In this document: piece by piece, positions 62 through 45,154 of the stretch | Position numbering within the stretch: position 1 is the first letter of the stretch | How the letters are laid out: the number at the start of each line of letters is the position of its first letter | Origin: Azolla caroliniana | Taxonomy: Eukaryota; Plantae; Polypodiophyta | Direction of reading: 5' to 3' | DNA length: 64,000 nucleotides | Assembly (NCBI GenBank): GCA_043228905.1 | Contig: JBHGNT010000020.1 | Location: forward strand, 1,860,001-1,924,000 | Made by a program: the position numbers and the translations under genes | Notes under the pieces: generated by a model | Told to the model about the DNA's origin: nothing | The model's database searches: none | Seen by the model: the letters and a program-made list of their open reading frames with translations, nothing else

Positions 62-909
62 TTGAATGCCGGACACTCGGCTCTAGAATGCACTATGAGG
101 ACGCGATGTGTAATCTGTCAATCCAAGAGCCATATGACGGATAGGTGTGAGTATAATCTGTTGAACCGGCAAGCACCGCTCGTCCGACAAATTGAGCCAT
201 GCAGCAGCCGGGATGAAGAAGACGAACGCTGGCGGCGAATGGACCGCGACCGACCGGCACAGGATGTCCGGTATGGCGATAGACGGGAGAATGATGTCTG
301 GTACGGTGATCGGCGGGATAACTATGACCGGCATGATCGATACCGGGATTACAATAGACGATACGAACATTACGATTGGGAGCACTCCCCCAGGTATCGT
401 CAGCAATGGGAGGAATACGGCAGATATAACGGGCAACACCGTCAAGAGTATCGCAATAAGAAGAGCTATAACAAAAAACGGCATTTTAAAAAAGGCGGCT
501 ACCCCCGGGATTCGGAACAAGAAGCTCCAAGCAGCGAACCGGTCCAAAACCCCGCGCGTACCGCAGGACCTGCCCCGGGTACAACAGACAATGCCGAATC
601 TAGCAATACCCGGAAAGCCTACTGCTACTACTGCCGACAGGAAGGCCATACAGTAACCAATGCCCGGTGAAGAGCTATGAAAAACGACCGGCAGTAAATA
701 TGGTAGTCCCTGAGGTGGCAGATCTACAGCAAGTGACCACAAGGTCGAAGGGCATGGCCAAGGAATGGGAGACGCAGGAGACCATCCGGAAACAAGCAAC
801 GGAATGGGTAAAGAAAGCAAATGAACAGAATGTCACAGACTTACAATGGCAAAAGGAGAACACCGCAGGGCTTGCCAGCGGTAGTCACTCCGAGAACGAG
901 ACATGGTAG
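62..909 (+). pseudogene. gag: gag C-terminal part of A1 (two CCHC zinc knuckles, frameshifted)
   Basis: CVICQSKSHMTDRC and CYYCRQEGH..C knuckles, frameshift near 650, stop at 907-909. Confidence 0.8.
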
Positions 910-912
910 GCG

Positions 913-3900
913 TTGCAAGAATGCCAGATTATGTTGCCACTAGGAAGACTCCTACAACTCGTGCCAAGATTCACGGAAGGACTGAAGACGGCCATGACGG
1001 CAGGAGAACCATCACCGACACCGATACTCTTCTCGAATCCAGAGGAGGGACCAACGGTGGTGGACACCAGCAGTCCGGTAATCACTTCCATTGTAAAAGG
1101 GAAAGAACTCCCCAACACAGTTATAGACGGAGGCTTTGGGGTGAATGTAATAAGCCTCCGGACGTGTGATGCCCTAGAAATCCACGAGTGGGAGCCGTGT
1201 CCGTTCTAGTTGCAGATGGCCGATACAAGCTCAGTGCGGCCGACAGGATTAATACGGAAATTAGAAGTCACCGTCGGCGGTCATACATTTCACATCTCGG
1301 CCGTAGTGCTACAATTACAGGCACAAGGCGCATACCCGCTATTGCTGGGGCGGCCATGGTTGAAAACGGCACATATCAAACAGAATTGGAGGAAAAATAT
1401 AATTACCTTCCGGTGAGGAAAAGCCAAGGTACGGGTACCAACACAGCCAAGGACGAGCACTGGCAAGGAATGTACACCGTTGTATGCGGAATGCGTCAAC
1501 ATGCTAGAAGGGTTAGCTGACGAAGAAGAAGCTCAGTACCTGCAGGAAAACCCGAAGATCATACCCCTCTTCGAAATTGACATTGCCGAACTAGTAGCAC
1601 CATACTTACCGCAACCGGAAGAGGCTGAAGCAGAACCAGATAAAGACGCAATCCGGGAGTTACGGCAAGCGCAGGAAGCGTTGGAACGGGAAATGGCCGT
1701 TTCACAGTGCGTAAAAGCGTCGCAACTGGAAGAGGTGAACCAAGGGACCACGGACGAAGCAAAACCTGTGCACATCGCCAAGGAGATGAAGTCCGAAGAC
1801 AAAACGGTGATGATCACACTTCTCACAGAATTTCGCGATGTGTTCGCCTGGTCATACGAAGACATGCGAGGACTCGACCCTCAGTTATACCAGCATCAGG
1901 TTCACTTGAGCAAGGACGCAAAACCAGTGGCACAAAAAAGGTACCGAATGAATCCCAATTATGCCGCCAAAGTCAAGGAGGAAATCGACAAACTGCTAAG
2001 AGTTGGCTTTATCCGTCCGGTAAAGAAAGCGACATGGCTGAGCCCGATCATAGTCGTACCGAAGAAGAACGGAAAAATTCGAGTTTGTGTGGACTACCGG
2101 AAACTCAATGCGGCTACGGTAACGGATGCGTTTCCACTTCCGTTCACAGATGGAGTGTTGGATGTCGTCGCCGGCCATGAGGTCTATAGCTTCCTAGACG
2201 GATTCAGCGGGTATAATCAAATCCGGATGCACCCCGATGACCAAGAGAAAACGGCTTTCGTCACCGAATGGGGGGTGTTTGTGGCCGTGGTGATGATGTT
2301 TGGACTCAAAATGGCATCGGCAACATTTCAACGAATCATCATGGAAATCTTTGGTGAATATATTCCGGCTTTTATGCAGGTTTTCCTTGACGATTTCGCC
2401 GTCTATAGCCGGGAGGAGGACCATTTTCAGCACCTTCGCCTTTGTCTTGAAAAGTGTAGAGCGTACCGGCTAAGCTTGAATCCGGCAAAGTGTGTATTTG
2501 GCGTATCCAGTGGAACTCTATTAGGACATATTGTGAGCCAGGAAGGTATTGCAGTTGACCCGGACAAAGTGAAAGCCATATTAGAAGCACCGGCGCCGGC
2601 AACGGCAAAGGCATTAAGCCGGTTCTTAGGCCAGATCCGATGGCACAACCGGATGCTCTGATACTTGGCCGACCTGGCTACACCGTTGAATGCCGCCGTA
2701 CATCGGACACCATTCTAGTGGACCAACACCGAGGATAGGGCGTATAGGGCCCTCAAGGTACTATTGTCGCAGGCACCAGTAGTGCAACCTCCGGATTGGA
2801 GTAAAGAATTTCACGTGTTCGTGGACGCCTCCGACATCGCAATCGGAAGCGTACTTATGAAGCTTACGGAGCCAAAATGGTACCGGCCAGTGTACTATGC
2901 CAGCCGAAAGCTATCCCAAGCAGAACGAAACTACTCTACCACGGAACGGGAAGCTCTAGGGATGATCTACAGTGTGACAAAGTTTCGGCATTATTTATTG
3001 GGAAGGAAGTTTTCCTTCCATGTAGATCATTCGACACTCCTTTACCTGGTGTCCAAAGCGTCACTCACCGACAAATTGGCCCGATGGACCTTACTGTTAC
3101 AGGAGTTCGAGTTTGAAATATTCCACTGACCCGGTATACAGCATGCCGTGGCGGATTACTTAAGCCTATTAGAGTCCGGAGAGACGGGTGACGGAGTAGC
3201 GGATGAGTTTCCGGATGCGGAGCTGTTTCGAGTCACTACGGAGACGGAAGCAGATGAGATGGTGGCACAGGAAGACAAATGGCTCACAAATATGCACCAG
3301 TTTCTGAGCACAGGACTGCCTCCGGAAGAGATGAACCGGGACGAACGGAAATGCCTGGCGGTGCAAAGCCGACATTTCTGCTTACTGCAAGACACACTGT
3401 ACCACAAGGGCGCAGATGGCATATGGAGACGGGCGGTGCGCAACAATGAAAAGGAACTGATACTGAGGGAAACCCACTGCAGAGTTGCCGGAGGTCACTA
3501 TGCCGGAGATGCGATGGCCAGGAAAATATGGCAAAGTGGCCTATGGTGGCCAACGACATTAAGAGATGTTGTACGGTACGCAAAAGAATGTGACCTATGC
3601 CAGCGAATGGGCCAGCCAACGGAGCAGGCTCGTATGCCACACTAGCCGGTACTACCACTCGAGCCATTCCAGAAGTGGGGGCTGGACTTTGTGGGACCGT
3701 TCAAGCCACCGGCAATGAGAATGGGTAATCGATACGTCATCGTCGTGACGGATTACTGCACGAAATGGGTGGAGGCCAAAGCATTAAGGGACAACACCGC
3801 GGCGTCAACGGCAAAGTTTCTATATGAGTACATCTGGTGCCATTACGGATGCCCAATTGAATTAATAAGCGACCAAGGGGGGGCACTTTCTCGGCCAAGT

Positions 3901-4669
3901 AGTGGAAAGCCTGACGACATTCTATGCCGTTGTCCACAAACGGAGCACACCTTACTATCCACAGGCGAACGGTTTAGCGGAATCAATGAATAAGACGCTC
4001 CAGAATATCCTCCGGAAGATCGTCAACGAAAACCGAACGGATTGGGACATAAAGCTACATAGCTCGCTTTGGGCATACCGGACGACATACAAAACGAGCA
4101 TCCGAACAACACCGTTCTGGTTAGCGTTCGGACTAGAGGCGGTAATGCCGGTGGAATTCCAAGTACCCAGCTTACGGATCCAGCTACGGGAACGGCTGAA
4201 CGAGAAGGAGTCAGAGGCAATACGGTTGACATCGCTGTGTGAACTCGAGGAACAACGACTGGCCAGCATCCTGCACTTAGAATTGGAGCAACGGCGACGG
4301 AAAGCATTTGTCGACTGGCACAGGAAAGGAAACGAAAAAATGTTCGCAATCGGCAAACCGGTGTTAGTATTTCAGACCCGGATGGGCAAGATGCCGGGTA
4401 AACTATGGTTTAGATGGACCAGACCGTATTGGCTAACACGGGAGTATAATGGGTCCTACTAGTTAGGGACACTGGCCGGCGAAGTGCTAGGCAAATGGGT
4501 CAACGGATTCCGATTGAAGCCATATACAGGACCGATGCCTAAGAACCCATTTGAGCAAAGGACCGACACCAGTGAGGGAAACGACAACCACCAAGACGGC
4601 AGAGACGGCGAGCCGGTAACTGGGGAAAGTGAGGCCGGTAAGGGTCCGAGAGGACCAACGGACAAGTAA
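913..4669 (+). pseudogene. pol: pol of A1: protease, RT, RNase H, integrase (several stops, frameshift near 3885)
   Basis: PR VIDGGFGVNVI and LLLGRPWL; RT 1480-2661; RH FHVFVDASDIAIG and YSTTEREAL; INT HHCC (HC..GGHY...CDLCQ), SDQG, YYPQANGLAE; GPY-like WTRPY...VNGFRLKPY. Confidence 0.93.
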
Positions 4670-4851
4670 CGTCACACTAAATTAAATTATTAAAAATAAA
4701 ATAAAATAAAATAGAAAAGAAAAGAAAAGAAAAGAAAAAAAACAATCATGCAAAAGCGAGGAATGAATGGATGAAAGAGCGAGGAGCGAAAAGGTACGTA
4801 GTGGGCATTTAAAGCGCCACCACAGGACATAATGCTATTTTAGTACACGAC

Positions 4852-7746
4852 ATGCACACACTCGAAAAAGGCGCCAGAATGCACAGACAAAAACCACTGC
4901 GCGTAGAGACCCTTTACTTTCGCGAACCCAGGAGCACAGAAGCACCAAGACGCTGCAAGATCATCAGACGAGAACCTGCGCACAGAGAACCCCCGCCTTC
5001 TGAACTCTCTCTCTCTCAACCTCACTCTCATCACCATCCAACCTCGCCACCGCAATCTGACCTCGACACAGAAATGGACCCGCAAACGCTATCGGAAGCC
5101 GCCAAGACATGGCTAAAGCAACATGGGCTCGAGGGCTTCTTGATGATGATGGAAGTACCGCCACACAAAGAAGCCGACAAAGTGATAAAAGAAATCGACA
5201 CAGAGGTCATAACGGCAGAGGCGATTCGAGCGTTAACAGGCCTTCCGGAGGGAGGCATACTCACGATCGACAATCCAACCCCGGAGCAACTCATTAGGTA
5301 TTTTGGTGAGTACTCTCTAGCCAGCAAGGGCTACCGGACACAGGGCGGCGGAGATATGTTGTTCCGCGAGATTGCTCGTGTGCTCCACGAATACGGCCAC
5401 GTGTACCCTAGACCCCCTGTCATGCCACAGAACCGGGCAGGGATGATCATCGCCACCTATGAAGGGGTCAAGGTGGATTGGCCGGTATTGATCGCAGACG
5501 GGTTGTGTGTGGCGATCAAGATCGTCAGAGGCAAAGACGGCAAAGAAGGCCGAGACGGACGGAGGATATGGCACGCCGTAACGCAGTGGCTCACCTTGCT
5601 TGTGCCACCCGTCCAGTCCGTCCTGCCCAAGAAGCGAGGAAGAGTGGCGGACGACACCCCAAAGACGGCTTCCAAACGACAACAGTTGTTGGCCTCTAAG
5701 GCCAGTAAGGGAAAGGCGGCGGATGCAGAACATGCGGCAGCCGAAAGCGCCCAACAGAGGCGCAGGAGGAACCACCGGCACGGCCCGTAAAGGTTACACT
5801 CCGCGGACCGGTGAATAGAGAAGCGGACCCCTTGGCGGCAAAACTCAATGCCGGGACTCAGGAAGAGGAAATAGAGTAGGAACCTACGGAGCACCTCCAG
5901 CGACGGTCGTCGGCAAGGACCGTTGAGGCAGTCGGGAAATGTTCGGACCCTCAGACGGAGGGAACACCGACTCCCCATACTAAGACTCCAACGCCAAGGA
6001 AGGAATCAGAACCGGAATCAGAAGCCCCGGCACCACCGGCAACACCAGCAAGTCCCATCCCACTAGAGCCGGAAAGGTCAATGCAACCTCCCTCGGCCAG
6101 CCAAGAAGAAGCACAAGGGGAACCAGGACAACAGGGTGGTCCACGGGCATAAACGGAACTGCAACTCGCCGCAACCAGGCGGGACCACCCCTCTACAAGT
6201 GAGCCCATCTGTCAAACCTCCGTGCAAGCACAACAAGGCACCGGTAGCCTGTGGCTCTGGTGGATAGGCGAACATATAGCCGGAGCAGTGGGGTATATTG
6301 AGGCGGAAGAAAGAGCGCAAAGCGAACGGTTGCTTGTCACAACCGAACAACTAGAGACGGCCCAGTCCAGAATCCGATGCCTTGAAAAAGACTTGGATCA
6401 GGTCACGACAGAGATGGCCAAAATGGCCTTAACGGCAACACAGATCCAATCACTGGTGACTCCGGTAAGTGTATAGAATAAAGAAACGGATCGACCTGTA
6501 CATACCAATAAGACCCCGGCAACGGAAACCGTTCCGACGAGAGATGCGGCGCAAGCCCAGGAGCTTGCGGAATTGAGAGATGAACTTGCCGCACAAGAAG
6601 CGCTAAGGAGCCGTGAACGAGAATTGAAGATAGCGGCCGAAGCCGAATTAAAGAAGACTGCTGAGAACCTCCGTCGGGCAGAGGAGAGCCTCCGGAAAGG
6701 CCATCAAGCGTACGACCGGCTAAAGGAGGAGAAAGACAAAGTGCTGCAGGAAAAGGACAAGCTACGGAAAACGGCGGAAACAGAGATTGAACGGCTAAAG
6801 GAAGAGCTCCGCCAGCAGAAGGACCGCGAGGACCGGGCCCGTCGACAGATCAATGCACGACTCAAGCAAAAGACAGATGATTTTGAGCACCTGCACCGGG
6901 ACTACAAACGGCTAGAAACGGAGCATAAGGAATGGATGGCCGAGCTCCAGCAGGAAGTTGATCGGGCCGCGATGGCGATCGCCGACGAACGTGCGGAAAA
7001 TACAAGACACTTGGACGAGGCGGAGAAGGTCCGGATGGAGCTCCAGAGGCAGCAACAGGAAGAAAAAGAGAGAGCGTCAACAATATTGCAGAAATTACAA
7101 AGTACATATCAAAGGCAATTGACGCATTACAAGGCGCAGGCGGAAGACAATGTCAAAATCATCAAGCAACTGAAGGAGGAACGGCAAGCGGTGGAAACCA
7201 AATCACAATTGGGAACGAGCCGGATTCAGTCCATCCTCAGGGCATGGCTGAATCAGACAAAACACTTGATTGATGAAAGCTCCGTAAAATGGTGGACAAA
7301 GTGGGCACAAAACGCGACGGAACTCCAGTTGCTACGGGTAGATGTGGCAAACCGGCGGAAGGAAGGAGATGATTGTTATACGTTGACTTCCGAGGACTTC
7401 ACCGCCATACGGGACGAGCTGGCCGACGACTTCCAAGTCCTGGCGGATGAACAGCTGGCGTAGGTCAGGCAACTCGTAGCTCAGCTAGACGATGATAGGC
7501 TGGACGCTCAAATCCAGTTTGAAAGCTACGAGCGGTCCCGGGTTTGGGAAGAAAAAGCACGGGAAGCGGCAACGGTTAACCTTAGTGATGAGGAACCGTC
7601 GCCGGCTGAGGGCCAGCCCGGAACCAGTCAACCGGAGACCACTACGACGCAGGGAGCAACAATGGAGACGCCGGTGTTAGAGCAACAAACGGAGGAGCAT
7701 CCGCAACAGCCATCAACGGACCCGTCGCAGCAGACATCAACAGAGC

Positions 7747-7781
<35 letters not shown>

Positions 7782-7847
7782 CCAATTCCAGATGAACCAT
7801 TGGAGACTCTCGAACAAAGCATTCTGGATATTTTGGACGAAGAATAG
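4852..7847 (+). pseudogene. extra ORF downstream of pol in A1 (globular N-terminus, Pro/Glu linker, long coiled coil, poly-Q tail), interrupted
   Basis: ORF pieces 4852-5790, 6222-6476, 6573-7463 and 7662-7847 are collinear and homologous with the A2 pieces (WLKQHGLEGFL / WSNQHGLGGFL; WWTKWAQNA / WWSKWAKQA). Confidence 0.8.
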
Positions 7848-7857
7848 CAAGGGTCGG

Positions 7858-7899
7858 TTGTGGATTCGACATACAAGGTACTTTCCCACGGGCGTGCCA
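7858..7899 (-). other. inverted PBS / tRNA-Arg 3'-end copy in place of the PPT (A1)
   Basis: TTGTGGATTCGAC-13nt-TCCCACGGGCGTGCCA ends 2 nt before the LTR TG; minus strand reads TGGCACGCCCGTGGGA. Confidence 0.75.
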
Positions 7900-7901
7900 T
7901 G

Positions 7902-8336
7902 TGTTACCGGCCGGCAAAGGAGTCCAAAGTGGGAAACGAAGGGTTATTTAAGTAGTAGGAATGTGGTTGTAATTAAGCTATGAGTGTGGACGGACGAACT
8001 GGAATCGGTATGCCGTTCCGGATCTGGACTGATCCCGAACAGGTGCGGATGGCACCGTTTTGTAATACAGACCGGAAACCTATTTAAAGGCCCGGATACA
8101 ATGTAATCAATAGCGGTTAATTAATAAAAGCCTAGCGTTGTTATCTCTCTGTGTTAATTGCCGTTCTGTCTTAATTGTTATATCTTACGCGTGTGATTAT
8201 GAAAGACGATCATGCTAAGTAACTTAATTAAGTCGGATTAAGCTTTGAGTCTAATCCGGTTGCCGTAACACCCTTTGGTGAAGTGTCTTCCGTAGACACC
8301 CTGTGTTAGGCCATTGTCCGGCCCTAAGAGTTAACA
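7902..8336 (+). repeat. 3' LTR of A1
   Basis: TGTTA...TAACA termini, TATA-like TATTTAAA, homologous along its length to the A2 LTR. Confidence 0.85.
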
Positions 8337-9156
8337 TGTGCCAAAGTGATCACACTCTAACTAGAGATATATGTAGATGTTAGGTGAGAAAACCATAGTG
8401 CTTCCTTCATTCTACTATCATTATTATCGTGCACTCGTAGAGTCTCAAACTCCTATTCACGTCATCATCTCTAGGTATGTGACACTTAGCATATGTCTTC
8501 CTCTGAATTCAACTTTTATCTCCTAATCAAAGTCATATGTCATGGTGGGATTGAGCAAGATTGTTGTTCACCTGTTTGTTTGAAAAATGGGTGACAATGG
8601 TTGTCAAGTGTTACCCCGTACGAGATGTACGGAGAGTCAAGTGTGATGAGCGAGGGTCGAATGTTATCATAATGTTGTTGTGTATGTGTAGGGGGCATAA
8701 ATGTAATTGTGAGTCGATACGTATGTGAACACATGCACACGTGTGTGCATGTGGATGGATACGAGGAGGTATGAGTGAGTGTCCAGTATGAATGCTCTAG
8801 GGGGCTTACACCCCTTTGTATCTACCCCCTCTTGTACTATTTAACCCCTTATGGGGAATGAATGAAATATGAATGAACATTTCTCTCTATCTCTCTTTTC
8901 ATCTCTCTCTCTCTCTCTCTCTTGTCATCTCTCTTCCTATCTCTCTCCCTCAACGTTGAACCCCCTTGGGAGGGGGGTGGAGCCATTCTAGGCACCACCC
9001 CCCACCCCACAATGCTTCTCAACGATTCTCAACATCTTCATGCCAATCTCTCTTACCATCATACTCTCCATTATCTTCGCTATTACGCCATGTCTATCTT
9101 TGTCATTGATAATCATCATCGTCCTTAACCCTAACCCTAAAACGTACAACACCTTT

Positions 9157-9173
9157 TGGCGACCACAATGGGA
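9157..9173 (+). other. primer-binding site, tRNA-Arg (UCG-type)
   Basis: TGGCGACCACAATGGGA 5 nt after the 5' LTR; complementary to a recalled plant tRNA-Arg 3' end (...TCCCACTGTGGTCGCCA) with 1 mismatch. Confidence 0.75.
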
Positions 9174-11064
9174 TCCCCCTTTGGAGACGGAGTCGAAGAA
9201 TGATACGCGACAATGTGAGGCATAGTGATGATGATATGTAAGAGATGTCCGGATAATGATGGCGATATGCAGCAAAAGGCGGAAGAAATCAGAAATGGAA
9301 GATTGACAAGATTGACTGCTGCACAATTCTACAATGAATTAATCTCTATATGTGAATGTTTTGTGTGGTCTGTTTTTGCCCTAAATGTCCGAGAAATGTT
9401 GGCCAAGATGTACAAAAACAGTGTCAATGCATGAGAGGAAGTTGCAAAACAAGTTGCAAAACGATGGCGTAACATGAGTGTGTGAGAATGGAAATGACAA
9501 TGTGCAAATGTGCGGTTAGCAGCAACGTGCGCGTGTTCCAAGGAGACTGTGGAGGAAGACGCAATGTGTGGAGCGTGGGCCAGCAAGATGTGCGGGACCG
9601 GAATGGGACGTGTTCACAGTTTCCAGTTTCCAGAGAAGCAACGCGGAAAAAGTCGGAACCAGAACAAGAGTTGGTTGGCACCAAAGCGACCGGAGGGTCG
9701 GACAAGGTCAGGGAAGCAGACAGGCCGCCAGGATGACGGACGGTGTCAGACGACGACGAAACCGACAGAGATGGTGATGGAGTCCGCAACGGAGGCAGCC
9801 GGAGCAATCGAGAGCCGAGGAGCGGCCAAAGCGGCCGGAATAGCCGACCAGTGGCCGGAGTGGCCAGATCAACCCGATCGGACAAAGACAGCGCCAGCCA
9901 CCGAATGGAGCGGCGGTCGTATAGTGGTAGCGGCAGAGTGGCAGCCGCTGGATAGCGGCTGGATCGATTTCTGAAATGTGCAACGACACATAACGGTCAG
10001 AGTGGCCGAATGGTGCCAAACCGGAGGCGGCCGACACAGCCAACAAACAACGATGGCAATGGCCGGAGCGGCGACCAGACAAAGTCGGACAGTGGTCGGA
10101 GCGGCCAAAATGGCCAGAATGGCCGGGAGATAGCCAGACCAACCAGAATGGTAGAATAGCTGTCGAAGCGAGGTGATGGATGGACAACCAACGACCGAAA
10201 CGACGAGCCGGATAGCCAGAAAGACACGGCTGAACAGTGACAGAAATGAAGATAGAGACGACCGAATAACGTTGGCGCTGGACAATGGCCGCACAAAGAC
10301 GGATGACGCGACAGAGATGTGCAGCCAACTGAAACAAAGAAAACACAGAAAAGAATGAAGGAGAAGAAATCATGGAGCAGCACAAACAGAGAAGAAGAGA
10401 AAGAAAGATAGGAGAAATGGAAGGAGTCATGGAGAGATGGAGAAGCGAGCACGAGAGACAAAGAAAGAAGAAGAAAGGAGATGATATACAAGAAGATGAA
10501 GAAGAAGAAGTGGAAGAAGATGTAGCCATTGATGAACAGAGAAGGAAGAGAAAGAAGAATTCATGGAAGAAGAGAAAGGCATGGACAGACAGACAAGAGT
10601 GGGAGAGGCAAAAAAGTAAATAAAAAAAAAAGGAATGAAGAAAGAAAGAAAAGAGAGGGGAAAAAAGGAGATAGGGGTATCGAATATAATTATAAAAGCC
10701 TTGAGGGTACATAATTTTATAAAAACATAAGGGTACATATACAGTTTTCAAAACCTAAGGGCATTGTCATTCGTTTAGAAAATTTGAGGCTAAAAATACC
10801 TAAAAACTTATCCACCTAAAGAAATTGACGTGATCGACCACGACAACCCACACAAAAATTAAAGGAAGAACACACATACATACAACATATTTTTGATGAC
10901 CCGAATGATTTTACGAAGTTCGTAAGTCGACAGAACGAGAATGTTCGTGTCGCGGAAGATTTGCTGACCGACAAAGATGTTCGAGTCAAGCACTCCGATC
11001 GAGGGAGTCGATCAATGAAAGGACCGATGGAAGTTTCGGTCGAAGAAATATCATCATCAAGGCA

Positions 11065-11105
11065 TGTGGGATCGACGTGCAAGGCACTTTCCCACGGGCG
11101 TGCCA
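11065..11105 (-). other. inverted PBS / tRNA-Arg 3'-end copy in place of the PPT (B)
   Basis: TGTGGGATCGAC-GTGCAAGGCACTT-TCCCACGGGCGTGCCA, 5 nt before the 3' LTR TG. Confidence 0.75.
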
Positions 11106-12246
11106 TATTGTGTTACCCCGTACGAGATGTACAGAGAGTCAAGTGTGATGAGCGAGGGTCGAATGTTATCATAATGTTGTTGTGTATGTGTAGGGGGCAT
11201 AAATGTAATTGTGAGTCGATACGTATGTGAACACATGCACAGGTGTGTGCATGTGGATGGATACGAGGAGGTATGAGTGAGTGTCCAATATGAATGCTCT
11301 AGGGGGCTTACTTTGTATCTACCCCCTCTTGTACTATTTAACCCCTTATGGGGAATGAATGAAATATGAATGAACATTTCTCTCTATCTCTCTTTTCATC
11401 TCTCTCTCTCTCTCTCTCTCTTGTCATCTCTCTTCCTATCTCTCTCCCTCAACGTTGAACCCCCTTGGGAGGGGGGTGGAGCCATTCTAGGCACCACCCC
11501 CCACCCCACAATGCTTCTCAACGATTCTCAACATCTTCATGCCAATCTCTCTTACCATCATACTCTCCATTATCTTCGCTATTACGCCATGTCTATCTTT
11601 GTCATTGATAATCATCATCGTCCTTAACCCTAACCCTAAAACGTACAACATCACATAATCTAATACTCAACAAAAAGACAAAGCACATATACAAGGCGCA
11701 ACATATATCTCTAGTTAGAATTCGGTCCCTCCGGATGGGATCCAAATTGGACGAGCCGAAGGAAGGAACGGACCGGACAGATCCGGTGTGAACTAGATCT
11801 AGGGACATATCTGTAAACATGTTTCTAGTGTGACTGTCATGGCCACATCTGTAAATAGTCCTAAAGTCATATAAGTATAAATATGACTTAGGGCAATCAC
11901 TTATATGTGTGAATGTCATTATTGTTGTATAGAGAGAGACATAGTGAGAGCGGGAGAGAAACAGAAAGTATATTTTGTTGTAACCGCCGATTGGCAAAGT
12001 CATAGAGCTCGAGGTCATTGCCTCTAAGTCTCGCATTGTACCTTTCCTCTCATAGTGATAGTTGGAGTATGTGGGCTCTCGTGGTTTTTTCCCATTTAGG
12101 GTATTCCATGTTAACATCCGGTGTCCTCTCTGTTGTCTATGTAAGTGTATTAATCTCCATTTCTATTTTGATCTTCCATTGAGTGTCTAAGACTCGGTTG
12201 TGGCCGAGCACTATTCCTCACAAGCTGGTATCAGAGCAACCAATAA

Positions 12247-13776
12247 ATGGAAGAGTCATTCGGAAGCATGTTCAAGCTCACCAGCTCGAACTATCCAATG
12301 TGGAAGTCGAAGATGAGGGACATGCTTGTGGTCAAAGATCTCTTGTTGCCGGTACAATTTGGAGACAAGAGGCCGGACAAGATCGATGCCACGACATGGG
12401 AGGTGATGCATATGAAGACGACGACATACATTAGATGCTTCATCGACATGAGCTTGTACAACAACTTTAATGAAGAAAGTAAGGCTCATGCGACCTGGGA
12501 GAAAATCGGTACCATGTTGAAGAGTAAAAATGTTGTAAATCGGGTTTCGGTATTCCAGAAGTTAGTGAGACTCTGGTACCAAGACGGATCTAGCATGGCG
12601 GAGCACATGAATGCATTCCAGGGGCTCATAAATCAAACAACCTCGCAAGAAGTACCTCTAGCTGACGAGGTACTTGTGTTGCTCCTGCTCGGTTCCTTCC
12701 CGGATAGTTGGGAGACGCTAGTTGTCACCTTGGGCAACGCCGGGCCGGAAGGAAAACTGTTGTCCCTAGCAAGGGTAGAATCAAGCTTGCTAGATGAAGA
12801 AGCTCACCGGAAGGACCGAGAGTTCGGAACTGATCCGAAGGCCTTGGTCACGGAAGATGCCCATAACCGAGGATTAGGCCGGAATTGGAGTCCCCAAAAC
12901 CTGGGACAAATTGGGGATGAGGTCGAAGTCAAGGGGAAGGCCCACTTGCTTTTATTGCGGAAAGCCGCGGCACTTCCAGAAGAATTGCCGACACTTCCGG
13001 AAAACCAAAGGGGGAGCCGACATTCCGGAACCGAAGAAGATTTTGGAAAGGAGAGGAACGTCGGCGATCGCGACAAGTGAAGAAGAACTGCTGCTAATCA
13101 CCAAGGAGGGTGAGTTGCATCTTGTCAGCAACAAAACAACATGGGTGGTCGACTCCAGAGCGTCATTCCACCTGAACCCCGACCGGAAGTGCTTCTCATC
13201 GTACAGAGCCGGAGATCACGGTTCTGTCCTGATGTTAAATGAAGGTGCATGCCGAATTGTCGACATAGGAGATGTGTGGTTGAGGACGTCAATTGGGTGC
13301 AAGTTGCTGTTGAAGGATGTCCGACACATTCCGGAGGTTCGGTTGAACCTGATATCAACCGGTCGGCTAGATGATGAAGGCTACACGGGTAGCATCCGGA
13401 ATAGAATCATGAAGTTCAATAGAGGAAGCCTAATCGTGGCTCGAGCCCGGAAGATCAACCCATTCTACCTGATGCATGCCCGAATATGTCGGGAGGAAGT
13501 GAACGTGGCATCCAAAACTGTCGGTGAGCCGTGGCACAGGAGGTTGTGCCACATGAGCTAGAAAGGGATGAGAAGACTTGCCGAAGATAACCCATTCCAG
13601 AGGTGAAAGACGTGCAGCTTGAGAAGTGCACCGACTGCTTGACCGACAAGCAAAACTGAACCTCTTTCCGGCCAAGCCATCGATGAGATGGAATGCACCA
13701 CTAGAACTTGTGCATACCGATGTATGCCAAGTGGACACGAAGTCACATGCCGAATCGCAGTACTTCGTGATGTTTA
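12247..13776 (+). pseudogene. F gag-protease-integrase N-terminus
   Basis: MEESFGSMFKLTSSNY, CFYCGKPRHFQKNC, WVVDSRAS, WHRRLCHMS, VHTDVC. Confidence 0.85.
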
Positions 13777-14248
13777 TGACGGGAACTCAACGCTCCTTAT
13801 GTGCAACGCTCGCCGACAACCGAGCTTAGAATCATACATAGAAAACAGGAAATAAAGCACGACACGAAGAAGAAACAAGTGCACAGGATGTTTACGTGGA
13901 AAACCCAAACTAAGGGAAAAAACCACGGTAGCCCACAGGCTGCAAACTATCACTACGTTGGAATGTACAAATAGTGAGTTCACGGAGGCAACGACCTCGT
14001 GCTCACGATCTTCGCCACAGGCGGCGGTTACAACAGAGGCAACGACCTCTTTCTCTCTCTCTCTCTCTGTACACTGTTAGGTGCTCTCTCTCTTCTTCTT
14101 GCACCAACAAAAATGACAACAACCACATCTAAAAGTTTTCCCTAAGTCATCTTTATACTAATATGACTTTTCGGCTATTTACAAATATAGCCACGGTGGG
14201 CTCTTCAGAAACATATTTACGAATATGTCTCTTCATCCGGAGAGCATT

Positions 14249-14518
14249 CCTCACCGGGTCTGTGCCATCCGGCTCTCCGTAGTCGGGTACTCCTCATCCG
14301 GTCCTCACCGGGTCTGCATCATCTGGCTCTCCGTAGCCGGGTACTCCTCATCCGGTCCTCACCGGGTCTGCATCATCCGGCTCTCCGTAGCCGGGTACTC
14401 CTCATCCGGTCTTCACCGGGTCTGCATCATCCGGCTCTCCGTAGCCGGGTACTCCTCATCCAGTCCTCACCGGGTCTGCATCATCCGGCTCTCCGTAGAC
14501 GGGTACTCCTCATACGGT
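14249..14518. repeat. 54-bp tandem repeat x5 in the U3 of the H left LTR
   Basis: Unit CTCACCGGGTCTGCATCATCCGGCTCTCCGTAGCCGGGTACTCCTCATCCGGTC. Confidence 0.9.
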
Positions 14519-14601
14519 TTCGGCCTCGGCCGAGTTTGTTCATCAGCACTGTTCTTTTCTCTTCCCATCCGGAGGGACCTGTCTCCCAACAAACTCCCCC
14601 T

Positions 14602-17600
14602 TCACTCCGGCATGGGGTGTCTTACCAGTCCGATCCGCTTCCGGCATGCATCCATCTTGTCGGGTATCAGAACTTTGGTCAGCATATCTGACCCGTTCTC
14701 GGTCGTGTGGATCTTCGTCAGTGCGAACTCCTGGTCATCTACTCTTTCCCGGATCCAGTGATACCTCCGTTGGATATGCTTTGTCCGGGAATGGTAGGCC
14801 GCATTCTTAGCAAGGTGGATGGCACTTTGACTATCGCAATAGAGTCGGTATTCATCTTGCCGGATACCGAGCTCTCCGACGAAGTCCTTCATCCATAGGA
14901 TTTCCTTGCCGGCTTCCACAGCTGCCATGTACTCCGCCTCCGTGGTTGACAATGCAACCGTCTTCTGCAGCCTTGACTGCCACGAAACAGCTCCCCTTGC
15001 ATATGTCATCACATACCCGGATGTAGACCGGCTGGTATCCACATCAGCCAACATGTCCGAATCAGTGAAACCGTCCAGTTGAGGTTTTCCGGAGCCGAAT
15101 CGGAGACACATATTTGAAGTGCCCTTCAAATACCAGAGTATCCATTTGACCGCGTTCCAGTGCTCCTTGCCGGGATTTTTCATGAACCGGCTCACCACTC
15201 CGACTGCGTATCCTATATCCGGTCGGGTACAAACCATTGCATACATCAAGCTCCCGACGGCAGAGGCATATGGAATCTTCATCATATCCGCCTTCTCTAC
15301 TTTCGTCTTCGGGCTTTGCTTGCCGGATAGCTTGCAGTTTGCCGGAAGTGTCGATCCGACCGGTTTCGCTTCTGACATGTTGAACCGGTGAAGCACCTTT
15401 GTCACGTACTTCTCCTGTGACAGCCATAATTGCTTCGCTGACCGGTTCCGGATGATGTGCATCCCCAACATTTGCCTTGCCGGACCCAAGTCTTTCATTG
15501 AGAAGGTCCGGTTGAGAGCCTTCTTCAGCATCCGTATTTTGACTTGGTCACGTCCGACGATCAACATGTCATCCACGTACAGAAGGAGTATCAAGAAGTC
15601 GCTTCCTTCGAACTTCTTCACAAACACGCAGTGATCGGCCTGCGTCTTGTGGTACCCTTGATCAGTCATGAAGGAGTCGAACTTCCGGTACCATTGTCGG
15701 GGAGCCTGCCTCAGTCCGTACAGGCTCTTCTTCAACCTGCATACCAGGTGCTCCTTCCCTTTCTCCACAAATCCTTCCGGTTGCTGCATGTAGATCTCCT
15801 CTTCGAGGTCGCCGTGAAGGAATGTCGTCTTCACGTCTAGCTGCTCTACCTCGAGGTCCATGCTTGCTGCTATACTTAGCACCGTCCGGATGGAGGTCAT
15901 CTTTACTACCGGGGCAAATATCTCGTCGAAGTCCACGCCCTTCTTCTGCTGGAACCCCTTCACCACGATCCTGGCTTTGTGTCTCGGGGGGTTGCCGGCA
16001 TCACCCGGTTTCAACTTGTACACCCACTTGTTTCGGAGTGCCCGCTTTCCTTTCGGCAACTCCACCAATTCGTACGTATGGTTCTCATGCAGGGAATCCA
16101 TCTCGTCCTGCATGGCACTTAACCATTTTCGGCTATGGGTGTCTTCCTTCGCTTCTTCGAAGCTTTCCGGCTCCCCCTCATCGGTCAGCAGAACATGCTC
16201 TACATCCGGAAATCTCCGGGGGGCCCTTCTCTCTCTGAGAGGATATCTCCGTCTTTGGGCTTTGGTGACCGGCTCATCCATTTGCTCTTCATTCGAATCC
16301 GATTCGGGGTCTTGGCCGGTTCCGGTTTCAGCTTCCTCTACTTCTTCTTCAGCCTATTCGGTATCCTCACCGTAACCGGCTGGTCCCTCGAGTGCTAACC
16401 GGTCTCTTGCCGGTTGGGTGTGCTCATCGTAGAGTCGATCCTTACCGGTCGACTCGGAGTTCATTATCTTCTTCTCCGACTCCCAATCGGCGAGAGTCTT
16501 GTTCTCCATGAAGATAATATCTCGACTCCGGAATACCTTCTTATCGACCGGGTCCCACACTCGGTAGCCGAACTCATCATCACCGTAGCCGAGGAATATG
16601 CATGGCCGGGTCTTTGGATCTAACTTTCCTCTCCGGTCCTTAGCTACATGCACGTACGCGAGAGACCCGAACACCTTCAGATGCCGGTAGGATACTTCCT
16701 TACCGGTCCACACTCTCTGTGGCGTGTCTCCGTCCAAGGGTACTGAGGGTGATCTATTTATCACATATGTCGCCGTCGAAAGTGCCTCAACCCAAAACTT
16801 CTTGGGTAGTTTTGCATGCGCTAGCATACTCCGGACCCTCTCCATTATGGTCCGGTTCATCATCTCGACCAAGTCTGTTTAGTTCCGGTGTCTTCGACAC
16901 GGTAAATTCGAGCCGGATTCCCTTCGAGCGGCAGTACTCCTCGAACTGCCCCTGGTACTCTCCTCCGTTATCTGCTCGAACCACCTTCAGTTTCCGGCCG
17001 GTTTCTCTTTCCACTCTCGCATGGAGCTCTTTGAAGAAGGATAGCACCTGATCCTTTGTCTTCAGCGGTGTAGCCCACAGCTTCCGGCTGTGGTCATCTA
17101 TGAATGTCACAAAGTACTGCGCTCCGGCATGTGACTTCGCGTCTACTTGACACACATCCGTATGCACCAACTCCAGTGGTGCATTACGTCTCATCGGTGG
17201 CCTTGGTCGGAAGGAGGTCCGGTTCTGCTTACCGGCCAGACAATCAGTGCACTTCTCTAAGTGCACGTTCTTCATTGGAATGAGGTTGTCGTCTGCAAGC
17301 CTCTTCATCCCCTTCTCGCTCATATGACACAACCTCTTGTGTCACAGCTCACCAGCAGTGTCGGATGCCACGTTCACTTCTTCCGGACATAACCGGGCAT
17401 TCATTAGGTACAGTGTGTTGACCTTCCGGGCCCGAGCCACAATCAGGCTCCCTTTGCTGAACTTCATGACACCGTTCCGGATGCTACCCGTGTAGCCTTC
17501 ATCATCTAGCCGACCGGCTGATATCAGGTTCAGACGAACCTCCGAAACATGTCGGACATCTCTCAGCAGCAACTTGCATCCGGTTGGTGTCGACAGCCAC

Positions 17601-18649
17601 ACGTCTCCTATGCCGAAAATTCGGCATGTACCTTCATTCCCCATCCAGACACAGCCATGATCACCGGTTGAGTAGGATGAGAAGCATTTCCGGTCCGGGG
17701 TAAGGTGGAACGACGCTCCGGAGTCTACCACCCAGGTCATCTCGTCGCCGGCAAGGTTTATCTCACTCTCCTCGGTGATGAGCATCAACTCTTCTTCACT
17801 TGCCGCGATTGCCGTCGTCCCCTTCCGGTCCGGCCCCCTCCGGTCTTTACCGTTCCGGTCCGGGGTCCGCTTCGAATCGGTACCGTCGGTCTCCTTATCT
17901 TTTCGGAAATGCCGACAGTTCTTTTGGAAGTGTCCCGGCTTGCCGCAATAGAAGCAAGTAGGCCTCCTCCTTGACTTTGACCGTGTCCCCGACTTCTCCC
18001 GGTTCTGGGGACTACGGTTTCTTTGTCTTCCGCGTTCCGATTCGGTAAGGAGCGCTTTGGAGTCAGAGCTCGTGTCCTTATCTTTCCGCCGCGCCTCCTC
18101 ATCTAGCAGGCTCGACTTCACTCTTGCTAGGGATAACCTTTTTCCTTCCGGCCCGGCGTTGCCCAAAGTGACAACCAACTTCTCCCAGCTATCCCGGAGG
18201 GAACCGAGCAGGAGTAGCGCTAGTACCTCATCGGCGAGAGGTACTTCCAATGAAGTTGCCTGGTGGATCAGCCCCTGGAAGGCATTCATGTGCTCCGTCA
18301 TGCTGGAGCCATCTTGGTACCGGAGTCTTACAAGCTTCCGGAATACCGAAACCTGATTAACAACATTTTTGTTCTGAAACATTATGCCGATCTTCTCCCA
18401 GAGCTCATGAGCCTTGCTCTCTTCATTGAAGTTGTTGTACAGGCTCATGTCGATGAAGCACCATATGTACGCCGTTGTCTTCATGTGCATCACCTCCCAT
18501 ATCGCGGCGTCGATTTTGTCCGGTCTCTTGTCCCCAAACTGAACCGGCAAGCAGAGGTCTTTAACCACGAACATGTCCCTCATCTTCGACTTCCACACTG
18601 AATAATTGGAGCCGGTGAGCTTGAACATGCCGCCAAATGATTCGTCCAT
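14602..18649 (-). pseudogene. H gag-pol polyprotein (two stops, one frameshift)
   Basis: ORFs 17342-18649 (gag, CCHC, DSGAS), 16787-17332 and 16354-16872 (INT), 14602-16281 (RT YVDD, RNase H KHIQRRYHWIRE). Confidence 0.93.
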
Positions 18650-19156
18650 TTTCTGTGTCGTTTCGCTCTGATACCACTTGATGGGAACTCAACGCTCCTT
18701 ATGCGCAACGCTCGCCGACAACCGAGCTTAGAATCATACACAGAAAACAGGAAATAAAGCACGACACGAAGAAGAAACGAGTGCACAGGATGTTTACATG
18801 GAAAACCCAAACTAAGGGAAAAAAACCACGGCAGCCCACAGGCTACAAACTATCACTACGTTGGAATGTACAAACAGTGAGTTCACGGAGGCAACGACCT
18901 CGTGCTCACGATCTTCGCCACAAGCGGCGGTTACAACAGAGGCAGCGACCTCTTTCTCTCTCTCTCACTCTCTCTGTACACTGTTACGAGCTCTCTCTCT
19001 TCTTCTTGCACCAACAAAAATGACAACAACCACATCTAAAAGTTTGCCCTAAGTCATATTTATACTAATATGACTTTTCGGCTATTTACAAATATAGGCA
19101 CAGTGGGCTCTTCAGAAACATATTTATGAATATGTCTCTTCATCCGGAGAGCATTC

Positions 19157-19372
19157 CTCACCGGGTCTGCGCCATCCGGCTCTCCGTAGCCGGGTACTCC
19201 TCATCCGGTCCTCACCGGGTCTGCATCATCCAGCTTTCCGTAGCCGGGTACTCCTCATCCGGTCCTCACCAGGTCTGCATCATCCGGCTCTCCGTAGCCG
19301 GGTACTCCTCATCCGGTCCTCACCGGGTCTGCATCATCCGGCTCTCCGTAGACGGGTACTCCTCATACGGTT
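19157..19372. repeat. 54-bp tandem repeat x4 in the H right LTR
   Basis: Same unit, one copy fewer. Confidence 0.9.
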
Positions 19373-19448
19373 TCGGCCTCGGCCGAGTTTGTTCATCAGC
19401 ACTGTTCTTTTCTCTTCCCATCCGAGGGACCTGTCTCCCAACAGTTTA

Positions 19449-20277
19449 TAGACGACAACATCTGGAAGCTGTGGGTCTCACCACTGAAGACGAAGGACCA
19501 AGTATTATCCGTCTTCAAGGACTTCCACGCGAGAGTGGAAAGGGAAACCAACTGGAAGTTGAAGGCGGTTTGAGCGGACAATGGAGGAGAATATTGCCGA
19601 TCGAAGGGAATCCGGCTCGAATTCACTGTGCCGAAGACACCAAAGCTAAACGGATTGGCCAAAAGGATGAACCAGACCATAATGGAGAGAGTCTGGACTA
19701 TGCTGGCACATGCCAAGTTGCCCAAGACATTTTGGGTTGAGGGGTCGATGACGGTGACGTATGTGATAAACAAATCACCCTCAACACCCTTGGACAGAGA
19801 CACACTGCAGAGGGTATGGACCAGTAAAGACACGTCTTACCGGCATCTGAGGGTGTTCGATTGTCTCGCTTACGTGTATGTTGCAAAGGACAAGAGAGCA
19901 AAGTTGATTCCGAAGTCCCGACCATGCATATTCCTTGGATACGGCAATGATGACTTCAGATATCGAGTGTGGGACGTGGTCGACAAGAAGGTCTTCCGGA
20001 GTTGAGACATAGTCCTCATGGAAGACAAGAACATTGCCGACTGGGAGTCGAAGAAGAAGATAGTGGAGTCCGGGTCGACTGATAGAGATCGGTCAAAAGA
20101 TACAAGGACTCATCTAGTTGGAAGCCGGATGACACTCAAAGAACCGACCGGATTCGGACAAAGACCCAACCAATCGAAGAAGAATCGGTCACAGGAACCG
20201 GAAAAGACCCCGAATCGGATTCGGATGAAGAACAAACGAAGGAACCAGTGGTCGAGAACCAAGGAAGAAGATATCCT
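19449..20277 (+). pseudogene. F integrase core and C-terminus
   Basis: LNGLAKRMNQTIMERV...LPKTFW...CIFLGYG; continues F after the H insertion. Confidence 0.85.
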
Positions 20278-35987: not shown

Positions 35988-37864
35988 AATATGTCGCGTT
36001 GTTACGCGCGTGCATGGAGAAAGGCGGGACCACGGGGGTCTTGGACTAGGGGGTGACGAAGCGTAGGAAGTCGTACTTCACCGTTTCCGAGGCATCCCAG
36101 AAGGACACCGGAAGCAACCGAAGGGAGAGGGAGAAAGAGAGGGAGTGCGCGCTTGACACCGACTCGCACACACACACACACAGGCCGACCCGACTCACGC
36201 CCTTATGTACTGGAAACGCAGGAAAGGGGAAGCACCCGACACCAACAGAGACACCAATATACACAGACAGACGCAAATGTATATATATAAAAGGAGGAAT
36301 ACATTCCCGGCTTCGAGCCGGACCAAGGTAGGTTACAGTAGTCGTCGGCTGCCAAGCCGTAGGTCGGGAGCTCACGGGCTTGTCGCGTCGAGCGGGGTCT
36401 TGCGCAGGAGACGAGCTGAAGCCAACCCTAAGCGAACACGAAGGGGAAGAAGAAGAAGAAACCCTAAATCTAGCGGTATACCCTCTAACGCAAAATGGGC
36501 AACCCCTTTCTCAAAGGGCGCTCCCTTCCTTTTATAGAACAAGGAGAGGGATGTGTTACAATGTGGGATAAATCCCGACTTACATGGGATCATCTGTCCC
36601 GACTTGACTACTCTTCGGCGCCATAAAGGCGCCCTCGTTATTCACACTAAATGTACAAGGGTGAACACACATGCCACACCCCGTCGATGTAGCCAATGTT
36701 TCCCGGTTTCCGCCTCTGGCCGAAATTCTTCACGACAACGTCTCCTTAACTCGATAGACCCACTTACACAGAAGAGCACGTCGATTCTTCGGTATTTCGA
36801 CCAAGCCTCAAGTGTTGTTTGCACGAATGGAGTTCATTTCGGATTCCATTGCCAAATGCCAGGTGGCCGAGTCGGCTGATGCCGATGCGTCTTCGTATGA
36901 CGTTGGTTCTCCGGTGTCCGTAAAGAAGATATAGGAGAGTATCTCTCTGGGGGTTGTGACAATCTCTCAATCATCGAGGTATGACTTCGCTTGGCTTTTG
37001 GACAGATTGATGCATGGTCGATTCATTGAACACGACATCCGAACTTCGGACGATTTGTCTGTGTTCGGGGTCCCAGAGTCGGTATCCCATTTCGCCATAT
37101 GGTCCAAAACCGAGGAAAATACATTTCTTGGACGTTGGTGCAAGTTTGCGGCGATCATCTTTCGGGATGAGGGTGTACGCCTCGCTTCCAAAAATCCTCA
37201 ACTTGTCGTAATTCGGCTTACTGCCGGTCCATAATTTCTAAGGGATCCGAAGTCCTAGAGGCCTACTCGGCGACATCTTGATTATGTGTACTACCATAAG
37301 TAGGGTCTCTGCCCATAAGCCATTCGACAATCTGAAGTGTTGGAGCATGGAAACTATCCTTTCTTGAATTGTTCGATTCATTTGCTCGACAATTCCATTT
37401 GTTATCCTTTAGGCTAAACAAGCCCTAACACACGGTGTCCCTATGGAACACTTCACCAAAGGGTGGTACGGTGAGATTTGGATGGACCGTGGTGTCGAAT
37501 GGGTCTTAACCGGTTACTAACCGGCACTGTTAATGATCGTAACACACGCGTAAGATTAATTATATTAAGCACAGGACGATAACCAAATAGACACTAGACA
37601 ATATGTAAAACAACAACGCTTCTATTAATTATCCGTCCCTGATTACATTCTTGTTGGGTCCTTTTATAGGTCTCTAACTGAGTTACAAATCGGTGCCAAC
37701 CGGCAACGATCCGGTCTGGATCCGAATCAGCATACTGATTCTGGTCCGTCCGCCCGCTTCTCAAAATAACATAATATTTATTAATTACAACTCCCTATCC
37801 CTAATTAAATACCCCTTTCGCATTCTGGACTCTAATTGGCCCTTTGGCCTTGCCGGCCAACACA

Positions 37865-37906
37865 TAGCAGGCCCGTGGGACAATACATTGTACGTCGAAC
37901 CCACGA
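37865..37906 (+). other. inverted PBS / tRNA-Arg 3'-end copy in place of the PPT (A2, degenerate)
   Basis: Element strand TCGTGGGTTCGAC-GTACAATGTATTG-TCCCACGGGCCTGCTA, 2 nt before the LTR TG. Confidence 0.7.
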
Positions 37907-37916
37907 TTAGCCCTTT

Positions 37917-40112: not shown

Positions 40113-40116
40113 GCGT

Positions 40117-40243
40117 TGTCACGTTGTTACGCGCGTGCGTGGAGAAAGGCGGGACCACGGGGGTCTTGGACTAGGGAGTGATGGAGCGTAGGACGTCGCG
40201 CTTCACTTCTAGGGCATCCCAGAAACACGCCGGAAGCAACCGA

Positions 40244-40294
<51 letters not shown>

Positions 40295-45150: not shown

Positions 45151-45154
45151 GCGT

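Follow-up and report, generated by a model that had tools for sequence, protein, structure and literature searches.

A tRNA 3′-end-like module in the place of the polypurine tract: a candidate plus-strand origin in an abundant gypsy clade

How does a long terminal repeat (LTR) retrotransposon start its plus strand when the place of the polypurine tract (PPT) is taken by something else? This question is raised by a stretch of Azolla caroliniana DNA (contig JBHGNT010000020.1, positions 1,860,001 to 1,924,000, forward strand), here called the window, which holds a non-coding LTR element (element B) and two copies of a gypsy family (A1 and A2) that carry the likeness of a transfer RNA (tRNA) 3′ end at the border of the 3′ LTR. 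Coordinates are positions within the whole 64,000-nt window unless a locus (L001 etc.) is named. To our knowledge, retroviruses and LTR retrotransposons are all taken to prime the plus strand from an RNase H-resistant PPT, and the PPT serves as a defining feature in annotation tools. The sequences described below point to a very abundant gypsy clade without a PPT, and thus to an LTR retrotransposon with what appears to be a new type of plus-strand origin.

The motif that marks this site is the 16-mer TCCCACGGGCGTGCCA. In element B it occupies 11090-11105, followed by TATTG and the LTR start TGTTACC. An exact copy in A1 (7884-7899) is followed by TG and TGTTACC, and A2 has a copy with two mismatches, TCCCACGGGCCTGCTA (37880-37865, minus strand), giving three matches in the window where 0.01 are expected by chance. 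An earlier note on this DNA had placed the motif at the corresponding site of A1 and A2 beside a different LTR, and had stated that the 3′ LTR is not preceded by a PPT; both statements hold. Purines make up 40-60% of the 15 nt that precede the LTR in the copies that carry the tRNA-like sequence, compared to 80% in two relatives with an ordinary PPT (L006 and L007). The note also described the geometry of a primer-binding site (PBS) facing the other way, and the minus strand indeed reads LTR tip …ACA, a spacer of 2-5 nt, and then TGG with the tRNA complement. The distance from CCA to the LTR start TGTT is 2 nt in A1, A2, L001, L003, L014, L015, and L016 and 5 nt in element B, a mirror image of the 2-5 nt that separate the 5′ LTR from its PBS. 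Since the window holds no A-type 5′ LTR, the 2-nt spacer of A1 could be the first two bases of the LTR. As a side observation, the two spacers within an element are equally long, at 5 nt each in element B (9152-9156 between LTR and PBS, and 11106-11110 between CCA and LTR) and 2 nt each in L001 and L003; the two element ends may be processed symmetrically, although this is a very small sample.

The 16-mer is the end of a 40-nt module composed of the T-box GTGGGTTCGA, a 13-nt hairpin, TCCCAC, and GGGCGTGCCA. The internal region of element B ends with this module, reading …GTGGGATCGACGTGCAAGGCACTTTCCCACGGGCGTGCCA (11066-11105), and the B module is 88% identical to that of A1 over 42 nt. We aligned six copies, namely A1, A2, and B along with L014, L015, and L016 from three other assemblies. 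Their consensus runs from GTGGGTTCGA through a hairpin of 13-14 nt (C/A-GTAC-AAG-GTAC-T or GTGC-AAG-GCAC), T/G-TCCCAC, and GGGCGTGCCA to TG and the LTR start TGTT. For the outer stem, in which GTGGG faces CCCAC, together with the inner hairpin, 90.7% of cells show pairing, as against 30-61% when the partners are slid. One compensatory change, from A:U to G:C, is seen in the stem and hairpin of the six copies, and 79 of 500 shuffles do as well, which leaves covariation of the module stem suggestive only. Folding single sequences of the module as RNA gave no significant result (z-scores of -1.9 to +0.35). With L001 and L003 added, the total sample comes to eight copies (A1, A2, B, L001, L003, L014, L015, and L016), and conservation is strongest at the CCA end: GTGCCA is present in seven of the eight and GCGTGCCA in four (A1, B, L015, and the fern locus L003). 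This conservation spans reverse transcriptase (RT) identities down to 60%.

Leaving out the hairpin gives GTGGGTTCGA-(G/T)-TCCCAC-GGGCGTG-CCA, which corresponds to a T-stem, the start of the T-loop, the return strand of the T-stem, the 3′ strand of the acceptor stem one base short, and CCA. The T-box, CCCAC, the GGCGTG end, and the CCA are all features of the 3′ part of mature tRNA-Arg(UCU), the tRNA that the earlier note had named, allowing a 1-nt gap. Three observations speak for this identification. The last 9 nt of the module are the 3′ end of iPBS 2237 (CCCCTACCTGGCGTGCCA), a primer complementary to plant PBSs, and are also the final 9 nt of iPBS 2270 (ACCTGGCGTGCCA) (table in PMC11680832). 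A full-text search of the literature with tRNA strings returned only iPBS primer tables and named no tRNA behind iPBS 2237. Real tRNA genes with the pattern TTCGA-NN-CCYAC-NN-GGCGTG were found in at least 116 DNA stretches of IMG/VR, and ARAGORN assigned 51 of the 87 typed matches to Arg(tct) and 34 to Trp(cca); these are bacterial and phage tRNAs and not those of the host. They show that the pattern is a genuine 3′ end of tRNA-Arg(UCU) type. A phage tRNA-Arg(tct) in L019 ends GTGGGTTCGAGTCCCACAGGGCGTGCCA, which equals the module with one extra base and no hairpin, a match that is in part built in, as the module itself supplied the search pattern. Four matches of the 16-mer itself in phage contigs were judged to be chance.

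The genes of eukaryotic tRNAs do not encode the CCA. The module therefore either comes from a mature tRNA or has been selected to match one. It is not itself a tRNA gene, a tRNA-derived short interspersed element, or a unit of the Helenus type, as it runs only from the T-arm to CCA and has no full cloverleaf with A and B boxes. An Rfam scan of 7780-7960 with E-values up to 10 gave no tRNA match, and ARAGORN likewise missed the module, as expected of an interrupted 3′ fragment of a tRNA.

The LTR borders indicate where the plus strand starts. In all elements with both LTRs (B, L001, and L003), the 5′ LTR starts with TGTT and carries no module, and in L001 and L003 the target-site duplications (TGTAG and GAAAT/GAAAC, respectively) directly abut this TGTT. 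If these borders are a guide, plus-strand DNA must begin at or just after the CCA. Purine-rich remnants do remain up to approximately 8 nt before the T-box (GAAAAGGG in A2, GCAAGGG in A1, ACAGGG in L001, and GAAGGA in L003), and the commonest sequence upstream of the module in the contigs of this genome is GAGGATTAAGGATGGGG. Such a remnant, lying ∼45-55 nt upstream, is probably not the primer, because the module would then be part of the LTR.

Relatives of the family were collected by a protein search with the RT. The module stands at the PPT position in five further copies from other assemblies (L001, L003, L014, L015, and L016). The nearest named RT relatives are ferns. Although they lack the PPT, the elements have the domain order, TG…CA LTRs, and 5-bp target-site duplications of Ty3/gypsy elements (Metaviridae, non-chromovirus). 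In A1, RVT_1 lies within 1480-2661, RT_RNaseH within 2764-3129, and Integrase_H2C2 within 3148-3645, and these domains, together with an additional open reading frame (ORF) called ORF-C, are all on the plus strand upstream of the module. The order in L001 is Ty3_capsid, RVT_1, RNase H, and integrase. A1, L001, L003, and L014 leave no doubt about the coding strand, and in L014 gag lies downstream of the PBS. Relatives at ∼51% RT identity keep an ordinary PPT, as does the copia element of the window (GAAGGGGGAG, with an initiator-tRNA-Met PBS, TGGTATCAGAGC), in agreement with the earlier note; for this reason, the module is best seen as a clade-specific replacement of the PPT.

Copy number was estimated from word depth over 7800-11200 in the contigs of four public runs. 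The A-type LTR, the B LTR, and the final ∼120 nt of B reach a depth of approximately 1e5, against approximately 20 in the single-copy flank at 8370-8597. Within the internal region of B it is mostly 700-5,000, but rises to 34,000-96,000 for 10878-11105. Among the variants listed from these contigs, there is no majority variant inside the module. The success of the family indicates that its priming site works, whatever the primer may be. Table 1 collects the features of the elements in the window and of the most informative relatives.

Table 1. Features of element B and family A in the window, and ends of related elements at other loci.
Feature	Positions	Strand	Description
Element B 5′ LTR	8609-9151	+	TGTTACC…ACAACA; 98.2% identical to 11111-11650 over ∼545 nt
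Element B PBS	9157-9173	+	TGGCGACCACAATGGGA; 5 nt (CCTTT, 9152-9156) past the LTR end
Element B internal region	9174-11065	+	Non-coding; last ∼230 nt common to a far more abundant family
Element B module, tRNA-Arg(UCU)-like	11066-11105	+	GTGGGATCGA, hairpin CGTGCAAGGCACT, TTCCCAC, GGGCGTGCCA
Element B spacer, CCA to 3′ LTR	11106-11110	+	TATTG, 5 nt; 2 nt (TG or AG) in other copies
Element B 3′ LTR	11111-11650	+	Direct repeat of 8609-9151
Gypsy A1 module	7860-7899	+	GTGGATTCGA, CATACAAGGTACT, TTCCCAC, GGGCGTGCCA; 12 nt past the ORF-C stop codon (7845-7847)
A-type 3′ LTR	7902-8340	+	TGTTACCGG…GTTAACA; TATA-like TATTTAAAGG and AATAAA on the + strand; differs from the B LTR
A2 module	37865-37904	-	Acceptor end decayed (GGGCCTGCTA); T-box GTGGGTTCGA intact, hairpin present
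L001 (ENA contig)			RT 66% identical; perfect target-site duplication TGTAG; PBS TGGCGACTCTATTAGGGA 2 nt past the LTR; 3′ LTR border …GGTCCACCAGGTGTGCCA-AG-TGTTGGG
L003 (fern Adiantum nelumboides)			RT 60% identical; PBS TGGTGACCACGATGCG; target-site duplication GAAAT/GAAAC; 3′ LTR border …GTGGGTTCGTGCAGTCCATCGTGCGTGCCA-AG-TGTTACG
L006, L007			RT 51-52% identical; ordinary PPT GAAAAAGGGGTAA directly before the LTR

For the minus strand, the elements have a putative PBS at their 5′ end. This sequence, TGGCGACCAC…, lies 2-5 nt past the LTR and reads TGGCGACCACGATTCC or TGGCGACCACTAAGGC in other copies of the family. Its first 12 nt are those of the ERV9 PBS tggcgaccacga, which has been labelled Arg or Trp (PMC4724089). 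The module and the PBS are of different tRNA types, Arg(UCU)-like for the module and …GTGGTCGCCA for the PBS. With RNA parameters, the duplex of the iPBS 2237 sequence with the module complement is calculated at -25.4 kcal/mol, compared to -23.1 kcal/mol for the perfect 12-nt PBS duplex.

From these features, we tentatively propose that in this gypsy clade the plus strand originates at the 40-nt module, which serves in the role of the PPT and is primed in trans by a tRNA. The module would derive from the 3′ part (approximately positions 49-76) of a mature tRNA of the tRNA-Arg(UCU) type, of which it would have kept the T-box, CCCAC, GGGCGTG, and CCA, while gaining the 13-nt hairpin after the T-loop A and losing one acceptor base. 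Once synthesis of the minus-strand complementary DNA (cDNA) has passed the module and the RNA template is gone, this strand would bear TGGCACGCCCGTGGGA (TGGCACGCC…) beside the U3 complement. The 3′ end of the host tRNA-Arg(UCU) (…GGCGUGCCA) would pair with this cDNA and be extended by RT through U3-R-U5 and the PBS. RNase H would then take off the plus-strand tRNA, as with the minus-strand primer, leaving 2-5 extra bases that integrase would trim to TGTT. Both the start of the plus strand at CCA and a tRNA acting as the primer in trans are inferred from the sequences. Applied to the clade as a whole, and held with a shade more reserve, the proposal is that two tRNAs are used: a …CGTGGTCGCCA tRNA for the minus strand, and tRNA-Arg(UCU) for the plus strand at a mirror-image PBS, which would make both the PPT and primers cut by RNase H dispensable. 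The T-box and the hairpin might extend the pairing to tRNA positions 49-58, around 1-methyladenosine 58 (m1A58), with the hairpin bridging the modified A58, although this last step is speculation.

Priming by a tRNA in trans gives a single cause for two features, a mature tRNA end with CCA at the U3 border and a PBS-like spacer of 2-5 nt, but several points count against it. We know of no retroelement with a tRNA-primed plus strand, which sets a low prior. Simple pairing of a tRNA 3′ end would need neither a conserved T-box nor a hairpin. The perfect match to known tRNA-Arg(UCU) 3′ ends covers 9-10 nt in A and B, 8 nt in L003, and 6 nt in L001, and is followed by a 1-nt gap or mismatches. ARAGORN found no tRNA gene in the window, L001, L003, or L004, and several of the eight module copies are old or decayed. 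A primer made from the element's own RNA would be more tolerant of such divergence. In removing the minus-strand primer, RNase H normally cuts where the 3′ end of a tRNA meets DNA, and its recognition of such an end in an RNA/DNA hybrid may have been reused for a non-purine plus-strand primer: the enzyme would cut the genomic RNA just past the CCA and spare the tRNA-like stretch, which would then be extended. Position, CCA end, and spacer geometry are explained equally well in this way. A cis primer is perfectly paired to its own cDNA, making the 1-nt gap and the divergence from the tRNA harmless, and conservation of the T-box and hairpin could reflect recognition features. Primers of the plus strand that are made by RNase H and are not purine-rich are well established in hepadnaviruses. 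The cost is two independent events: a piece of tRNA would have had to be inserted precisely at the junction of PPT and U3, and RNase H would have had to acquire a new specificity. In addition, the hairpin is impossible inside an RNA/DNA hybrid, and no extra or unusual RNase H domain was found in ORF-B, ORF-C, or the extra ORFs of L001. We regard such a self-made primer as possible though rather doubtful. The sequence data are fitted equally well by both explanations, and of the two we favour, still tentatively, the tRNA acting in trans.

The remaining explanations leave the module without a part in priming. It may be a structural signal, acting in end-to-end contact, strand transfer, packaging, or masking of the PBS, with a cryptic primer nearby, comparable to CYC5/CYC3 of Ty1 or to the 3′ PBS of Ty3 and Drosophila Gypsy. 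Long-range 5′-3′ contacts and second tRNA-binding sites near the RNA 3′ end are known from Ty3 and Gypsy (PMC1635307), the T-stem and inner hairpin are 91% paired in six copies with one compensatory change, and the L003 module resembles the reverse complement of the L003 PBS (CATCGTG in common). However, the module is in tRNA sense, so that on the RNA genome the 3′ strand of a tRNA could not pair with it; in the main family it is poorly complementary to the PBS, at ∼8 of 16 positions by eye, and its fold z-scores are weak. Neither the precise start of the LTR past CCA nor the absence of a purine tract is accounted for, and we consider a purely structural role unlikely. Cyclisation by pairing of PBS and module, appealing in L003 and weak in the main family, is a minor rival only. 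Less likely again, the module could be a neutral leftover from a switch of template to a packaged tRNA, with the old purine tract ∼45-55 nt upstream still priming and the extra bases removed later. The purine-rich remnant ending AGGG or AAGG up to ∼8 nt before the T-box would fit such a history, but the 5′ LTRs start with TGTT at target-site duplications without the module, integrases trim only a few bases, and without selection GTGCCA and the T-box would not have survived in both fern and host. There is very little to recommend a chance resemblance, or an error in strand or LTR borders by which the motif would be the ordinary PBS of an element on the opposite strand. Non-coding B does look symmetric, with either strand reading LTR, PBS, tRNA-sense end, and LTR. 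In the elements with an unambiguous coding strand, no such ambiguity exists, the three matches in the window far exceed chance expectation, and the module recurs in independent assemblies.

Element B has the direct LTRs and the PBS after the 5′ LTR that the earlier note had described (Table 1). A tblastn search found no match to RT, RNase H, integrase, or gag in element B, and there is no clean target-site duplication at its ends. Element B and family A have in common the first 10 nt of the PBS, the module, and the LTR start TGTTACC, and one contig runs from an A-type LTR end through CACATTT-TGGCGACCACTAAGGC into leader sequence like that after the PBS of B. Because it shares PBS, module, leader, and LTR tips with family A without RT, integrase, or gag, a reasonable reading is that B is a non-autonomous partner of family A, similar to a large retrotransposon derivative (LARD) or a terminal-repeat retrotransposon in miniature (TRIM), which is the position the earlier note had taken.

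Within family A, LTRs homologous to the A-type LTR are followed by the PBS in L014 and L015 and then by gag, which was seen in L014. The contigs of both loci (L014, 1860-2340; L015, 3372-3890) continue from ORF-C across module and LTR into the PBS, that of L014 extending to gag as well; either the assembly collapsed through the LTR, or these are tandem elements with one common LTR. A2 (37400-46298, minus strand) has a perfect 5-bp duplication, AATGG, on both sides, but its ends differ: the 5′ end starts like a B-type LTR (TGTTACCGTACGA; ∼140 nt 82% identical to B), and an A-type LTR forms the other end, at 3′. A2 has homologues of ORF-B and ORF-C, with no RT or integrase. In A1, these two extra ORFs past pol (4852-5790 and 6573-7847) are on the plus strand and lack a Pfam match. 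ORF-C is coiled-coil-like and rich in Glu and Lys, with a C-terminal poly-Gln run encoded by (CAA)n at ∼7745-7790 and a C-terminus, …LDILDEE, that is conserved in A2, L014, and L016. Past the integrase stop of A1 (4680-4860), an A-rich, PPT-like tract AAAATAGAAAAGAAAAGAAAAGAAAAGAAAAAAAA and a TATA-like GCATTTAAAGC lie just before ORF-B, and the same block is found ahead of ORF-B in A2 (46046-45890, minus strand). This block may be an internal promoter for the extra ORFs. A metagenome search with ORF-C returned a single uninformative locus (L009).

Among the elements with a PPT, the copia of the window (13777-19443, minus strand) has LTRs that are 96% identical and contain 54-bp tandem repeats (14194-14625 and 19101-19478). 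L006, with 52% RT identity, has 3.7-kb LTRs (3713-7479 and 13372-17138) that are 99% identical, each with two called ORFs of 282 and 310 amino acids. Other candidates were set aside: L002 (1-13693, ENA) joins a plant-like RT fragment, 64% identical to A1, to ordinary genes of bacteria (carbamoyl-phosphate synthase and RuvABC) and is probably chimeric, while L004 (Riccia), L005 (Adiantum), and L008 have no usable LTR pair.

Several known systems resemble the module in some respects. Like a canonical PPT, it lies directly upstream of U3 (0 to a few nt) and is inferred to set the 5′ end of the plus strand and the left LTR border; unlike a PPT, it is 40-60% purine, is a copy of a tRNA 3′ end with CCA, and may act with a primer that is not RNase H-resistant genomic RNA. 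Read on the minus strand, it resembles a minus-strand PBS in the …ACA tip, the 2-5-nt spacer, TGG with the complement of the acceptor and T-stem, and a comparable duplex energy, whereas it differs in lying on the cDNA strand at the other element end, in its Arg-UCU-like rather than …CGTGGTCGCCA type, and in that it cannot be refreshed by copying of the primer in each cycle. Hepadnaviruses, for the plus strand, and Tf1, in self-priming, offer precedents for unconventional primers without purine richness. In both systems the primer is released from the 5′ end of the element's own RNA, and in neither does anything like a tRNA stand where U3 begins. In Ty3, with its bipartite PBS, and in Drosophila Gypsy, with its 3′ PBS, the genomic RNA also has a second site related to a tRNA, located close to U3 and near the 3′ end. 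There, the T-arm and anticodon stem of the element's own primer tRNA are matched in antisense, the site serves minus-strand initiation, and the PPT is kept (Gabus et al., 1998; PMC1635307), whereas the module is in tRNA sense, ends in CCA, and replaces the PPT. The module is therefore not a 3′ PBS of this type: it is tRNA-sense, of Arg(UCU) type, and not antisense to its own primer tRNA. Helenus and the Cassandra TRIMs similarly carry sequence derived from small-RNA genes (tRNA-like or 5S-like) inside an LTR retrotransposon (PMC10886601). In Helenus, a whole tRNA-like unit inside the LTR has been proposed to act as a Pol III promoter, and PBS and PPT are kept (PMC10886601), in contrast to the 3′ part of a tRNA alone, with CCA, outside the LTR and at the site of the PPT. 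The plant LTR retrotransposon survey of Neumann et al. tabulates PBS types and does not mention a missing PPT (PMC6317226), and neither the PBS nor the motif string occurs in the supplements consulted (Neumann et al., 2019). In the literature searched, with most subscription journals outside its scope, there was no description of a tRNA end in the place of the PPT or as a second PBS; the nearest cases are Ty3, Gypsy, and Helenus.

What the finding would mean depends in part on the primer. PPT-based annotation of LTR elements will mis-score families that carry the module, and host small RNAs from tRNA 3′ ends might target the antisense strand or cDNA of these elements. The question of the primer is directly testable because the real tRNA and the module differ by one base, the 13-nt hairpin, and base modifications. 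Should the primer prove to be the element's own tRNA-like RNA, it would reveal a new RNase H specificity; should it prove to be a tRNA acting in trans, this would be a second use of host tRNA in the replication of a retroelement. In either case, a successful, high-copy clade, present also in the fern Adiantum nelumboides, appears to have swapped its PPT for a copy of a tRNA that ends in CCA.

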